From NCBI GenBank assembly GCA_943704425.1, contig CALSCP010001837.1, forward strand, positions 1 to 42,519: a stretch of DNA of 42,519 nucleotides, written 5' to 3'. A program made the position numbers and the translations under genes. Position 1 is the first letter of the stretch; each line of letters opens with the position of its first letter. The stretch is from Ministeria vibrans ATCC 50519. Taxonomy: Eukaryota; Protista; Filasterea. The notes below the pieces were generated by a model. It had not been told where the DNA came from. It made no database searches and saw only the letters and a list, made by a program, of their open reading frames with translations. Below, one piece after another: positions 28,633 to 36,408 of the stretch.

Positions 28633-28720
28633 CACACAAACACACAAACACAAACTCTAAAGACGCAGTCATCGAGCAAACACACGATAATATAGAGAGA
28701 CGCATAATTATGTTTTATTG

Positions 28721-29809
28721 TTACACCGTGGAATGATCAGAGTTGTGCGCAATTTCGTGTATCTGGGCAATGGCAGTGACATAGAGGCCCATAAGGGCAG
28801 TGATGGATGTCCCTTCGCTCGTTTGGGCGGCGTAGTCCGACTCAGTGTCTGCGTGTGAGCGATAGGCAATGAAGACACCGTCGCTCTCGACGACCCATCG
28901 GCGAATGTCGCTGAAGGGCACGCAGCTGAGTTCTCGTCGGGTGCGTTTGTCGAGGCGCGTGAGGCCGCGCGGCGAGATACACAGGAGGCGTGGAACTAGA
29001 CGTTGCAGTTGGGGGTCGCTCTCGCGCACAGCAAACTCCGTTTGGAAGTGACGTGGAAAGAGCAGAAGGAAGGTGGCAAGGAAACGCATTTGCGCAGTGG
29101 CAATGTCAAGTGCGGCGTCGCCATGGAATTTGCAACAGAGCGCGGCAACTCGGTCGCGTACGTGAGGGATGTCCAACCCGCCTGGAGGAAGGACGCTCTG
29201 CAGCTCCCGGCGTGTGGGGACAAAGTCGGCGGGCATCTCCTTGGCATAGTCGACCAGAAGCGTAAGGGATGCAAGTACAACGGCGTGCGGTTCGTCCATG
29301 GGCGTGTCGCCGCGTATGATGCACGTTTGCGCCTCGGCAAAGAGAACGTCTCGCTGAGCGTGCTTGACCGTCAACTGCGCGACGCTCTGGAAAAGCCGTT
29401 GGACAAAAGGCGGGGGCTGCAGGCCAGCGGTGTCGAAGAGCATGACAAGCTGTCTGTACGAGTGTTTTCGCGTCGACATGAAGCGGAGGGCGCGCGTACG
29501 CGCGACAAGTTCAAATGTGGCACGATCGTAGAATCGAAGAATGTCGTGCAGGCGGTGACAGGTCGCCTCCAGCTGTAACAGAGACCAGGCATCGCCATCG
29601 CGCGCTAGAGGCAAACATATGGCAATGATCAGCTCGGGTGGGAGCTGCAGGAGACGCGAGCTTGCGACGCCAGCGGACAGTTTCAACCCCTGCGGTGGCC
29701 TTCGCTCCTGCTGGACGCGCTCATCGAGCTCCTGGAGAGCCCGATAGCGTCGTAGTGCACGCTTCCTTCTCAACGGACTCGAACATACGCTCGAGTAACA
29801 CGAGCCCAT
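28721..29809 (-). CDS. N-acylated F-box protein with talin-head FERM F2-F3 (PTB-like) domains, intronless, 362 aa
   Basis: N-terminus MGSCYSSVC. F-box LLQLPPELIIAICLPL..LLQLEATCHRLHDIL. Talin F2-like DVLFAEAQTCIIRGDTPMDEPHAVVLASL. Talin F3-like LVPRLLCISPRGLTRLDKRTRRELSCVPFSDIRRW..YAAQTSEGTSITALMGLYV. Confidence 0.82.
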   Translation of the reverse strand: MGSCYSSVCSSPLRRKRALRRYRALQELDERVQQERRPPQGLKLSAGVASSRLLQLPPELIIAICLPLARDGDAWSLLQLEATCHRLHDILRFYDRATFELVARTRALRFMSTRKHSYRQLVMLFDTAGLQPPPFVQRLFQSVAQLTVKHAQRDVLFAEAQTCIIRGDTPMDEPHAVVLASLTLLVDYAKEMPADFVPTRRELQSVLPPGGLDIPHVRDRVAALCCKFHGDAALDIATAQMRFLATFLLLFPRHFQTEFAVRESDPQLQRLVPRLLCISPRGLTRLDKRTRRELSCVPFSDIRRWVVESDGVFIAYRSHADTESDYAAQTSEGTSITALMGLYVTAIAQIHEIAHNSDHSTV

Positions 29810-30007
29810 AGAAAATAATGAATTATTATGAATAATAATTTACTTTATTATTATTATTATTATTAGTTATTACCATCATAATAATAATAATAATAATATT
29901 AATTAAAAATATAATTATTATTATTATTATGAATATTGATTTATGATCGCTAGTGCTTTTGGTACTTGATTACATATGACTAGAATGATTAGAGTCGCGT
30001 AAAAAAT

Positions 30008-30771
30008 TTATTTCGGAAGGTTTGCAACGGGAGTGTCGGGGCGGGAGTAGAGAACAGTTGCAGCAAGTACAAGACAGGCGCCTACAAGCCAAAGAGGCGG
30101 CGGGGCAAAGTTGAAGAGGAACGCAGAGACAAGCGACGACATAACAATCGAGACGGACGTGGCAAACCCTGCGCGCAAGAAACATTCTGTCAGACACGAA
30201 AAGGAAAGAAGAAAGCGCACCTTTGGCAATGTTATCGGCGTATTTGACCACAACGGCCACGACAAGACCGCCCAGCGCACTGTTTGCAATCACGCCCCAC
30301 ACAAGCGGAGTGTACCTATCACAACATCATATACGACACACTCAGGCGGAGAAAGAGAAGAGGAGGCAAGTGGGGGAGTAGAGAGGTACCCATAAAAGAA
30401 ACCGAGAGCGTAGACCTGCTCTGAGTCGGTCAAGAGCACGCCTAAGAGCCCGATGACAGAGCCGTAGAGAGCCAGCTGCACATTGCGCACCCACACACTC
30501 TGCTTGCTCTCTTTGAGCATCTTCTCAAAATAGACGCCAGCAAAACCACTGCTAAGACACGCCATGACAACGGCAACAAGACCTGTCAGCGCCGAGCCCG
30601 TCGTCGCCGCCGTGTGGGCTTCTTTCCCGCCCGCCCCCGACACAGAAACCTGTACCAGCGCAATCCCCACCGCCAGTGACACCAGCGACGTCCATTTGCG
30701 CCGCGACAGCACCCGCGACAGCATCCCCACCGAAAAGATCGCCGTCGTCAAGATCTTCAATTGGTATCTAC

Positions 30772-32148: not shown

Positions 32149-35100
32149 TCAAAAAATTATGCTTCGCGCACCTTCTTGGACCCCTTGGAACACAGGCAAG
32201 TCCATTTGTGCCATTGGAACGCGTCGCTTTTGGCGCGGCGGACGACGCACCAGCTCCTCCTCCTCTTCCTCCTCCTCCTCATCATCATGTGCGCCCTCAT
32301 CCGACGACTCTTCAATGCCGCGCTTTGATACAATTGTCTTGGAGACACTCAAGCTGCCACCTGCGCTACCTTGTGTCGTCTTTGATCGCTTGCGTGCGCT
32401 CGTCGGTGTCTTGCTCTTGCCCGTTTTCTTCTTAGTCGAGGTTGTTGACAAGCTCGACAGGCTGAGTGACAGCGGCTGAGTAAGCTTACCAAACCGTACG
32501 CGGTCCTCGTCCTCGTCATCTTCGTCGTCCTCCTCCTCCTCGTCCTCGTCCTCCTCTTCCTCTTCGTCAATCTCGTCGTCTTCTTCGGGCGCCTCCTCGA
32601 ATAGACGCTTTCGACTGCTCGGCTTGGTAGGCGATGCTGTGGGTCTGGTCTGGGCCAGACGTGCCGAAAGAGCGCTCGCAGTCTTGCGACGCTTCTCCGC
32701 GAGTTCTTGGCGACGACGTCCTGTCAGCGAGGCACTTGCAGCACTGCGTTTCGTCGTCGTCACGCGTGCACGACGCGGTGCCTTGACCTTCTTGGTAGCG
32801 CCCGTTGCACTGGGGCTGCCCGAGCTTGGCTTCGCGCCACCCTCGAGGTGCACACAGTATTCTTCGGCGCGTGTCACGTCAACTGAGCGCGCCGGCTCCT
32901 TGGCGAGCAACTCGCGAGCGTACTTCCATACGAGCGCCTTGTCCTCCTGCTTGACGCGTCCCGAAAACTCATCGAGAACACGGAAGAAGGGCAGACGCTC
33001 CTCGACCTGTTCATCACTGGGCGTCTCGGTGCGCCCACCAAGCACCCACTCAATGCCACGACGATGAAAGACAATCATGGCCTTGCGTTGTGCATCCGAC
33101 ATGGTGACACCACACGACTGAGCAAGACGATGCGCAAGGGCCACCACAGTGGAGGTGTCGCCGTTTGCCTCGCTAAATGACGCCTGCAGCGCTGCGAGCA
33201 TTTGCGTAGTGGTGCCCGCCAAGCTCGTCTCACGCATTTTGGCCAGGAGTACCTTGAGAATCGCTTTGTAACGGTAGGACAGCGTGACGTACGCCCGGAA
33301 CAGCGACACGGCGGCACTCAGCGGAATCGCATTGTTACCCACAAGCTTGCACAAGCACAGGAGGGTCCGACGTCGTTCGCCCAGTGACAACGACTGTGTC
33401 CACGTCGACTTCTCCTCAGCAAGGTCCTCCACAGTTCCATCCGCGTCCGCTTGCTCGGGCATCTGGTCCCACTCGTCGCTGACGCCGTCGTCCGACAGCA
33501 CATAGGGAGCATCGTCGTCGTCGGCTCCGTCCTCTGTTGACTCAAGCGACAAAGCATGCTCTTGCTCAGGCAGCACCACCAACTCCTCGACAAAGGCGAC
33601 GCACTCGTCAATCACCGATTGAGACGCAATAAAATGCAGCCTTTCGAGTGTGGGCGCTGAAAAAATGAGCAGGAAATCCGACAGAGTCGCAAAGAGGTAG
33701 GCACGCAGACGCGACGGGAGTTGAGGCGAGCGTACAAATGACGTGAGTTGGTGCACAAAGAGATCACGGCGCTTAATAATCGTGTCGGCATCCACACTGG
33801 ACGACGAGGGCAAGAGGCGCACAATGTTGACAAAGACAATGCGCACCGCGGGCAACAACAACACCGAGTGGAGCGACTGAGCGTCCGCAAAGGCTGCGAG
33901 CAGACGCGACGTGGGCTCGTAGGCGGCGTCGAGGCTGCGGTGTCGTTGAAGTGCTTCGATCCGCTTGAGCGCAACGTGCACCGGGTAAAGAGCGTCGTGC
34001 ATTCGACCCGCGGCAGCATTGTCGTCGAGCAAACGATCAACACGCGCACCCAAGGCGTGAGTGTTCAGCAGTTCACTCACAAGCTCGTCCATGGCAATGG
34101 TCACGTCCCCCTCCAACTCGTCGTGCTCCAACATGAGTGACATGGCGCGTGTGCTCGCATCAATCACGTCGTCCTGCCCAAAGGTACTGGCCGCTGTGCG
34201 CAAGTGATTCACCAGCGGCGCCAGGTGACCGCGCAGGCGGTGAGTGGTGTACACGTGAAAATCAAAGGCGTGCACAATGGAGGCGAGGCGCGCCATTTTG
34301 TCGCCGTCGGCAGCAAAGCGATCCATGAGCGACGGCAGCTGCTTGGCAAAGTGAACGGTGAGCGTTTCGCGTGCCTCCTTGGCGTCCGCGCGAGCCTTGG
34401 GTGTCGACTGATCGCTTACGGCACGATGAACGGCCGCCTCGAGCATGGCAAGAAGTGTGGCCTCGTGACGATCTGTCTCTGCATTGTTCAAGAGGGCGTG
34501 CGTCAGCGCTGGCCAGTCGGTGAAAGATGCCTCGCAGCGCTTCCACATGCTATCGACAAGTACGGCAGCGTAGCCAATGGGAAGGAGACTCTCATCGTCG
34601 GCGCTTGCCTCGTCACTCACCAGACTCACATGGTCACCACAAAACCAGCGGACAATGGCATGCAGTGTTCGCAAATGGCCCTTGTCAATGGAAGTGACAG
34701 CAGACATGGCGCGCTTGCCTTTGCCTGTGCTCGCCTTTCCCCTTTGTCCGCCTCGTCGCCTCGTGCCATCATCATCGCCATCGTTGTCGTCGTCGTCGTC
34801 GTCGTCGTCGTCGACGGCGCTTTTTGGGCCGTCGTCGTTGTTCAACTCGATGAGGTGCGTGTGCAAAAACTGGCCGGCTGCAAGACGGCAGGGAGCGTCG
34901 TCGGGTCGCGTAAACATTTGCGTGGCAGTTCGGTCAATGATGAGCGAAACGAGGCTGTCGTCGTCGTCATCGAGGAGACGGGCGCGCGCGAGACAGGTTA
35001 CGAGACTGACGGCACGCGCAGCCACGTCGCTGCTGACATCGTCCACCATTTCGGTCATGCGCTTCTTGAAGCGCTCTGTGAGAGCCTGCAGCGACTGCAC

Positions 35101-36408
35101 AAAACTTGGGTTGCTGTACAGACGCAAGAGTCCTTCGACGGCCGCGAGTCGCACATGGGGCTCCTTGTCAAAGAGCGACCAGGCGATGTACTTGAGCTTG
35201 GTGTCGCGTGTCTGGCCACTCGTGTCGTCGCTGTCGTGCAGAAAGCGCTGGGGACAGTGTTCGAGCCAGACGCAGAGCTCGGCTATGCACTCGGCGCGAA
35301 TGTTGACAAAGAAGTCGCGGTAGCGGGTGAGAAAAATGTTCTTGAAAATGTCGCAAATGAAGCCCTTGGGCTCGTCGTCGGTCGCGTCTGGGTTCCACAG
35401 TGCACGCTGCATTGTCTGAAGGCGCTCAAGAAGCGCATCAAGATCCTTGGCGCGTGCACCCTTGGCGGACGCTCGCTTGCGCTCTGTAGCTGAAATTTGC
35501 TCGTCAATGTCGACGAGCTCATCGACCAGTGCTGTGTGCAGCTTCATGGCGGCAAAAGTGGCAGTGTGACGGACGGCGCGATGAGGCGCGGACGCAAGAA
35601 GACCAAGCCAAGTAATGACGGTGGTCATGAGACGACCGCTTGCGAGGTGGTCGCCGCAACTTGAAAAGAGTCGCTGCACAAAGTCGGCAAAGTTGTTGCG
35701 AAACTTCTTGTACTCCTTGGGCGCCGTCATGACAATGGGATAGGCGTCGCCCGAAGCAAGACTCAGACAGAGCTCCTTGATGAACGGCGTAATGTTGTCG
35801 CTGCACACCATGCTCTCGGTAACCACATCCTGACAACCGGCGCTGCGCGTGAAGAATGTCACCAACTTGGCGAGCGCTGCCACCGGGTTTCGCTCGTAGC
35901 TGTCTACCCATTCACACACTACCGCCTTGATGGCCGAACGACCACGCAGCACCACATCAAACAGATCGGCGGGCGCGGCGCTCTTGGTACGTGTCGTCGT
36001 TGCCTTCTTCTTCTTTGTGCGCGTCGTCTGCTCCTCGTCATCTTCCTCATCCCCAATCTCGTCGGCGTCGTCTTCATCATCATCATCATCATCGTCGTCG
36101 TCGTCGTCGTCGTCGTCATCCTCCTCCTCTGCATCACTGCTGTTGGTCGCCTCAAACGTGTTGTCATCTTCTGCTGCTGCGTCGCTGATGTCCTCGACGC
36201 GTTTCGCCGAAACGCGTTTCTTTGGCGTCGCTGTCTTGGCTGGACTCTTAGTCTACACACACACACACACACAGGTCAGTGTATGTGCACCAATTCACAC
36301 AGTAGAAAGATGTCAGACACAGGGGGGTGAGAGACAGGGAGAGGAGGAGGGGAGGGGGAAGGACGAGTGTTTCGTTGTTGAAACTTTTTTTTTCTTTGTT
36401 GGTACCAT
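32149..36408 (-). CDS. STAG: Cohesin subunit STAG/SA/Scc3
   Basis: STAG domain YPIV..KKFRNNF..HRAVRHTATFAAMKLHTALV. SCD motif RYRD..IRAECIAELCVWL..KLKYIAWSLFDKEPHVRL. HEAT-like body and an acidic/basic tail. Probable start ATG at 36408-36406 is followed directly by a GT donor and spliced to a large exon 36252-32149 (M|TKSPAKTATPKK). Confidence 0.93.

Follow-up and report, generated by a model that had tools for sequence, protein, structure and literature searches.

On the minus strand of a 42,519-nucleotide stretch of the Ministeria vibrans ATCC 50519 genome (contig CALSCP010001837.1, referred to here as the window), positions 28,721–29,809 hold a gene for a protein of 362 amino acids in which a talin-type F2-F3 pair follows what is very probably an F-box. 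It is a real, lineage-restricted gene of M. vibrans. The best explanation of this F-box/talin-like protein as a whole, to which we give a probability of about 0.4, is a lipid-anchored substrate receptor of an SCF (Skp1–Cul1–F-box) ubiquitin ligase with integrin β tails as the leading target; the SCF activity, Skp1 binding, acylation, target and expression are what we infer from the architecture. An earlier note on this DNA had proposed the order acylation motif with basic patch, F-box, talin-type F2-F3, and this order is borne out by sequence profiles and structure models (Table 1).

The C-terminal part of the protein is assigned to talin F2-F3 by both sequence and predicted structure. Pfam IRS-type phosphotyrosine-binding (PTB) domain PF02174 matches residues 259–347 well over its 22-bit cut-off (41.9 bits, E = 1.1e-10), and FERM_M gives a sub-threshold match to residues 151–245 (E = 0.004). 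A phmmer search of the PDB places the F2-F3 of talin-2 and talin-1 first (talin-2: E = 1.8e-8, residues 151–347). A full-length AlphaFold2 (AF2) model, folded from an alignment of 23 talin fragments, has a predicted local distance difference test score (pLDDT) of 84–97 over residues ~165–350 and of 83–97 in the F2 lobe; a mixed alignment of the query, F-boxes and talin fragments misplaced F-box tails onto the C-terminus and was kept out of folding. Foldseek with this model returns talin F2-F3 (E = 1e-12), and VIA-align superimposes the two lobes on talin with Z = 16.4 and F3 alone with Z = 15.4–15.6 (r.m.s.d. = 1.4 Å over 91–92 residues). The r.m.s.d. of the pair is large (~11 Å) because the predicted angle between the lobes differs, not the fold. 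In the model F3 is a PH/PTB sandwich with a C-terminal helix, as in IRS-type PTB domains. The three-lobed FERM clover, with a ubiquitin-like F1, an acyl-CoA-binding-like F2 and a PTB-like F3, is not seen: Pfam finds no FERM_N/F1 match and the region before F2 is all-helical. Nor is the protein a full talin, as only F2-F3 matches within the 362 residues and no F0, F1 or rod was found, in agreement with the earlier note. The strings on which that note relied (MGSCYSSVC, RRKRALRRYR, LVPRLL, IRRW, QTSEGTSITALMGLYV and SDPQLQR) are all present and are paired by HMMER with talin counterparts; LVPRLL, IRRW and the C-terminal helix fall opposite their talin equivalents, and the check it had suggested, structure prediction against talin heads, yields a model with the talin-type F2-F3 fold.

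In talin (talin-1 numbering, taken from the phmmer alignments), R358 forms a pocket for β3 W739 and W359 with I396 provides the surface for β3 residues 740–742, while I396 and I399 touch the leucine of NPLY and L325 is the pocket for the membrane-proximal helix (PMC2958305, PMC12237089). Four of these residues are kept in the F3 lobe of the F-box/talin-like protein (L271 = L325, R304 = R358, W305 = W359 and I347 = I399), and V344 replaces I396. Strand S5, T354-N-I-K-R358-W359-A in talin, reads S-D-I-R-R-W-V; the R-W of KRW is thus kept as RRW, and LVPRLL is kept too, as had been read from the sequence. Of the 59 columns in which the talin fragments show conservation of 85% or more, the protein is identical to talin in 27 and similar in 38, with ~25% identity overall. 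The lipid-binding lysines have fared differently. In the F3 basic loop K316/K318/K320/K322/K324 have become R/S/P/L/R, so that SDPQLQR does replace KGKNK as claimed before, and in the F2 patch K256/K272/K274/R277 are V/P/V/R, with three of the four membrane-orientation residues lost. The protein is therefore mostly without the talin residues K256, K272 and K274 (F2) and K318, K320 and K322 (F3).

Residues 48–91 are, judged from their sequence, very probably an F-box. An independent hidden Markov model (HMM), built from 20 clear M. vibrans F-boxes with the query left out, matches these residues with 16.3 bits (E = 2.8e-7, Z = 1), a score that no shuffled version of the protein reaches in 5000 trials (shuffle maximum 10.3 bits). 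When the same HMM is run over 988 natural stop-free six-frame pieces (91 k residues), the open reading frame (ORF) comes out on top. Within the matched part lies the diagnostic string LPPELIIAI...L......L.L.ATCHRL, corresponding to the LPxE(L/I)xxI...L...CxR core. An AF2 model of residues 1–150 built on an F-box alignment, and to that extent partly circular, has a pLDDT of 85–89 over residues 51–90. The structural matches to this model are weak and led by Skp1-bound F-box proteins, which make up about 15 of the best 50 VIA rows (Z = 3.6–5.0), including FBXO42, Cdc4, β-TrCP, cyclin F, FBXL17, FBXO31, Fbw7 and Skp2, with the modelled helices 58–113 superposing on the canonical F-boxes; since the alignment was made of F-boxes, these structural matches are consistency, not proof. 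MOG1 and Spo0J, matched to residues 1–150 by sequence in the PDB, are insignificant and were rejected, and an hhalign comparison of the F-box segment with an alignment that contained the query itself was discarded as circular. The last ~18 residues of the helical linker that follows (residues 92–150) may, by alignment, be the equivalent of the final F1 strand of talin; some talin matches begin to align at residues 132–137, and the remainder of the linker has no homologue in the protein-collection or PDB sequence searches.

The protein begins with MGSCYSSVC, in which Gly2 and Ser6 make a predicted N-myristoylation site and Cys4 and Cys9 are candidates for palmitoylation. The PROSITE-type N-myristoylation pattern is G-{EDRKHPFYW}-x(2)-[STAGCN]-{P}, and MGSCYSSVC fits it, with Gly2, an uncharged residue 3, Ser6 and nearby Cys; the motif is short and common. 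A polybasic amphipathic helix carrying RRKRALRRYR follows, which is helical in the full-length model as well as in the N-terminal one. It could bind the membrane or serve as a nuclear localization signal. The acylation pattern and the basic patch of the earlier note are thus both in place.

The integrin adhesome that later served animals in building tissues is already present in filastereans such as Ministeria. M. vibrans belongs to this group; it is unicellular, related to animals and equipped with an integrin adhesome (bioRxiv 10.1101/2020.04.29.069435). We find three integrin β tails in its genome, of which two read W..NPLF (..AAW-SSNG-NPLF-QPNTKEFD-NPLF.. and ..KW-KQGE-NPLF..); their W-x7-F spacing equals the Trp-to-aromatic spacing of β3 W739...Y747. 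Several cullins and an N-myristoyltransferase (NMT) are also encoded. Together with Skp1, the β tails, cullins and NMT form a genomic context that fits the F-box/talin-like architecture. In both β tails L003:1441-1680 (C2390) and L004:1441-1680 (C749) the membrane-proximal motif is NPLF, and the distal motif is NPLF in L003 and NPVI in L004; as these motifs hold no NPxY tyrosine, a switch by tyrosine phosphorylation is not possible there. There are at least three Skp1-type loci (contigs C220, C173, C2018 and C2043; L006-L009), of which two score ~92 bits and a diverged one 59 bits, and a further fragment sits where a contig ends. The Skp1 locus on C220 lies ~11 kb from a cullin gene. Next to Skp1 locus L007 (G000:C173) is the runner-up region of the F-box HMM scan, a 93-residue stop-free piece (plus frame 1, residue offset 598) that fits only the Arg/Trp-rich C-terminal half of the profile, with 12–13 bits, probably by chance.

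In the mechanism that we propose, myristate or palmitate and the basic helix would hold the protein at the inner face of the membrane, replacing the lysine patches of talin F2 and F3, and the F-box would recruit Skp1-Cul1-Rbx1. The F3 groove, made of strand S5 (..DIRRW..) and the C-terminal helix, would bind a short peptide of the W...NPxF/Y type in the cytoplasmic tail of a membrane protein, which would then be ubiquitinated and removed. The M. vibrans integrin β tails (..W-SSNG-NPLF..) would be the leading candidate targets, and the protein would in addition displace or compete with talin and so act as a down-regulator of integrins. A fuller scenario, in which a membrane-tethered SCF ligase with a talin-head receptor competes with talin and degrades integrins, predating animals or in parallel with them, and converges on the IDOL–LDLR pair, we regard as unlikely.

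Several observations weigh against a lipid-anchored integrin receptor, and other explanations draw on them. In F3 the S6-S7 hairpin (FTLDFGDY in talin) has been rewritten and several residues next to the groove are substituted (V for W351, D for Y377 and T for D397), so ligand specificity may have moved away from integrins; this replacement of conserved talin positions in S6-S7 and around the groove, together with an extremely long F3 branch, would suit an SCF substrate receptor whose groove has been retuned to some other NPxY/F-like or helical motif of a membrane or adhesome protein. The groove is known as promiscuous from the talin F3 complexes with PIPKI-gamma, layilin, RIAM and APP, which are among the structural matches. 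Such a receptor appears rather doubtful all the same, in that the residues kept (R358, W359, I396, as V, I399 and L325) are those that bind β tails, and the β tails of the organism itself have the matching W-x7-F spacing. The basic helix offers a further objection to the membrane anchor, as its RRKR could equally be a nuclear localization signal. A regulator that binds tails or Skp1 without any ligase activity, either as a membrane-tethered competitor of talin or as a Skp1–F-box trafficking factor, has known counterparts: DOK1 and ICAP1 are talin competitors in animals and yeast Rcy1 is a Skp1–F-box trafficking factor. A tethered talin head without a rod would occupy β tails without a link to actin, and nothing in the architecture but the F-box points to ubiquitination. 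Here too we find the case improbable, given a well-kept Skp1-contacting F-box core (LPxEL..I...L) and a full SCF set in the genome; moreover, F-box proteins that end in a peptide-binding domain are mostly substrate receptors.

The F-box assignment is itself exposed to the objection of a chance match, in which case the N-terminal 150 residues would be merely lipid-anchored helices and the whole would amount to a mini talin head pinned to the membrane. The Pfam F-box-like match (PF12937, residues 54–91) scores 16.1 bits (E = 0.0099), under the cut-off of 24.3 bits, and in the six-frame genome scan the site at 29,537–29,650 scores 19.4 bits (E = 0.03 per genome) and ranks about 50th of 57 matches. 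No F-box was found by sequence in the PDB with residues 1–150, and Foldseek on the N-terminal F-box model gives E-values above 4. The second-best natural piece reaches 13.1 bits by a chance-like match to only part of the profile, its Arg/Trp-rich end, so that a 13-bit chance match arises within only 91 k natural residues. In the full-length AF2 model, made without an F-box alignment, the N-terminal third is of low confidence (pLDDT ~50 at the F-box), with helices at the right places. Against a chance match stand two independent profiles that agree on the same 40 residues, the shuffling and natural-piece results, coverage of the diagnostic LPxEL-I-L-CxR part and a location N-terminal to the binding module that is canonical for F-box proteins; in the ESM Atlas, where the whole protein has no usable match, the best look-alikes of residues 1–150 are F-box clusters, at 0.81 only and hence a lead. 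We judge a spurious F-box to be more improbable still. Were the ORF non-functional, either as a retrocopy in decay or as a frame that is not transcribed, this would account for an intronless gene with no orthologue in the HMMER scan of representatives. It would also account for the want of a transcript-derived copy: word-index searches of the public protein collection with the whole protein, residues 1–150 and residues 135–362 gave no identical or near-identical protein or fragment, and a look-up of contigs encoding the protein had none on record. Since the whole-protein search overlooked talin fragments detected by HMMER, the blank word-index results exclude near-identical copies only, and the collection row nearest to M. 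vibrans talin (P0041) is only 58% identical, so that M. vibrans transcripts are not shown to be in the collection. A run of 362 stop-free codons has a chance of ~3e-8 at 3 stops in 64 codons, codon usage is native, AATAAA lies directly past the stop codon, and the fold is still confidently talin-like after ~70% sequence change. An open frame after so much change is not what a decaying copy would be expected to show, and we consider a dead frame highly improbable; it is the intact 1089-nt ORF, the native codon usage and an F2-F3 fold kept despite extreme divergence that make this a real gene.

With the talin head (PDB: 3G9W, talin-2 with the β1D tail; 1MK7, talin with β3) the protein shares the two-lobe fold, LVPRLL, the ..I(K/R)RW strand S5 and the C-terminal helix, at 20–30% identity. 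Unlike talin it has no F0, F1, rod, vinculin-binding sites or I/LWEQ domain, and it has gained an N-terminal F-box and an acylation motif along with its rewritten S6-S7 hairpin. A functional parallel may be drawn with the FERM-RING protein IDOL/MYLIP, which serves as E3 ligase to LDLR, VLDLR and ApoER2 and picks out the receptor tail to be ubiquitinated through F3 of its FERM domain (PMC7521653). Among the structural matches is the F3ab subdomain of IDOL (Z = 13.2); the resemblance proposed, an F3-type lobe that selects the tail of a membrane receptor, is functional only. IDOL has its own C-terminal RING, whereas the 362 residues contain none and would need Skp1-Cul1-Rbx1. The FERM domain of IDOL is complete and ERM-like with an extended F3, and there is no detectable sequence kinship beyond the fold; IDOL occurs in animals, while the F-box/talin-like gene is seen in Ministeria only.

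A membrane-anchored F-box protein is, as a concept, already known: Toxoplasma TgFBXO1 needs N-myristoylation (PMC6685633) and FBXL2 is geranylgeranylated (PDB: 6o60). Both are placed on a membrane by a lipid, but their substrate-binding regions are of other kinds, with no FERM or PTB domain, and acylation of the M. vibrans protein is only predicted. Canonical F-box receptors such as Skp2, Fbw7/Cdc4, β-TrCP and FBXO31 likewise have an N-terminal F-box, a linker and a C-terminal peptide-binding module. Here, however, a talin-type F2-F3 stands as the module where those receptors have WD40, LRR or some other known FBXO domain, and the F-box falls under the Pfam cut-off and has a four-residue loop insertion. 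Little is known, to our knowledge, of how filasterean cells switch integrins off, and we know of FERM/PTB lobes in E3 ligases so far only through the RING protein IDOL. If our preferred explanation holds, an F-box protein that borrows the integrin-binding lobe of talin would be a compact answer to integrin switch-off in filastereans, a new substrate-recognition module in the F-box repertoire and a natural case of a scaffold domain turned degradation adaptor. If there is no expression, or no binding to Skp1 or an integrin tail, the gene stays a curiosity of one genome.

On sequence comparison the gene is an orphan fusion, and the evolution of its talin-like part has gone ~25 times further than that of talin orthologues. 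A HMMER scan of 1.84 billion cluster-representative proteins gave 53 matches, all confined to residues ~132–354 and with 22–33% identity, and none to the first 130 residues. The named matches are proteins of a chytrid, a fluke and a tardigrade. Nine of the 53 were scanned with Pfam and proved to be talins, talin fragments or a tandem-FERM protein, none with an F-box; the true talin fragments carry Talin_middle, VBS and I_LWEQ domains. The M. vibrans assembly (2860 contigs, 29.72 Mb, introns present) yielded no second F-box plus FERM/PTB ORF in six-frame scans. Two contigs, C2497 and C2779, have both F-box and FERM/PTB matches, at least 9 kb apart or on opposite strands, and were rejected. The search for paralogues and for the architecture thus returned nothing else in the genome or among the protein matches, and full-text literature searches found no protein that joins an F-box with talin, FERM, PTB or NPxY recognition. 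The earlier statement that no F-box/talin-head family had been described agrees with both the literature and HMMER.

The genome has one true talin, on contig C12, which is the sole other match there and is 28% identical to the F-box/talin-like protein over residues 237–348; compared by its F3 exon, it is 30% identical over 93 aligned residues. The F3 lobe of the protein is no closer to this talin than to those of animals or fungi. In an F3 tree of 57 rows and 90 columns, limited to rows that match at least 75 profile positions, its terminal branch is 3.52 changes per site long, ~25 times the median of 0.14, and there is no supported neighbour; such a branch, without a supported tree position, permits no statement on donor, age or origin, retrocopy or not. 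The gene had been described as intronless and possibly retroposed. Intronless it is, and the talin of the genome is split by introns where the F-box/talin-like gene is continuous. Retroposition finds no such backing, with F3 at 30% identity, an unresolved tree and other single-exon genes in the window, such as that for cohesin STAG/SCC3. The best database match, P0001 (1529 residues), is a tandem-FERM protein whose second FERM is talin-like with an F0, and a long open frame at G000:C238:26078-28117 has two FERM_M matches and a weak IRS-PTB match that suggest a tandem-FERM protein.

Table 1. Features of the F-box/talin-like gene and its product, in positions of the window.
Feature	Residues	Position	Strand	Basis and remarks
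Complete intronless ORF	1–362	28721..29809	(-)	1089 nt, 362 aa + stop codon; single uninterrupted frame
Predicted N-myristoylation site (Gly2, Ser6), candidate palmitoylation Cys4/Cys9; MGSCYSSVC	1–9	29783..29809	(-)	Sequence motif
Polybasic amphipathic helix with RRKRALRRYR	12–35	29705..29776	(-)	AF2 pLDDT 90–95 in N-terminal model; helical in full-length model too
Probable F-box core (LPPELIIAI ... ATCHRLHDIL)	48–91	29537..29668	(-)	Pfam PF12937 + own-genome HMM; 4-residue insertion in H1-H2 loop
Helical linker	92–150	29360..29536	(-)	AF2 helices 96–113, 118–128, 134–148
Talin-type FERM F2 lobe	151–253	29051..29359	(-)	Pfam FERM_M, phmmer, AF2, VIA; most basic membrane-orientation residues lost
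Talin-type F3 / IRS-type PTB lobe	254–348	28766..29050	(-)	Pfam PF02174, VIA; peptide groove largely kept, basic loop lost
AATAAA, candidate polyadenylation signal		28714..28719	(-)	1 nt past stop codon; read from sequence
AT-rich AAT/ATT-repeat spacer, 200 bp		29810..30010	(-)	Between SLC35A-type transporter stop codon and F-box/talin-like ORF ATG

The first in-frame ATG of the ORF (..ttttct ATG GGC..) is preceded by several in-frame stop codons and is therefore the sole possible start within this exon; no AG acceptor lies ahead of it. Codon usage resembles that of the neighbouring genes in frame 0 alone (+0.16 bits per codon, against -0.25 and -0.28 in the other frames), and GC1/2/3 is 0.67/0.46/0.67, as in the adjoining genes. 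Upstream on the same strand lies a gene for an SLC35A-type nucleotide-sugar transporter. With only 200 bp between the two genes, the AT-rich spacer must hold the promoter and 5' untranslated region of the F-box/talin-like gene as well as the 3' end of the transporter gene. It also contains out-of-frame ATGs (~29871-29877) that could make a small upstream ORF.

Downstream, the gene is convergent with the 3' end of a multi-exon P4 flippase gene, and a GA-rich microsatellite of ~690 bp separates the two stop codons. Here the minus strand of the window is nearly all simple sequence between 28040 and 28600, with a long (GA)n run, several ~30-bp GAGAGGAGAAAGAAACAAAGT units and a (GAA)n run. The cohesin STAG/SCC3 gene (window 32149-35955, minus strand) is a single ORF of 1268 codons, whereas its flippase and SLC35A transporter neighbours are split into many exons; intron density in this region thus depends strongly on the gene.

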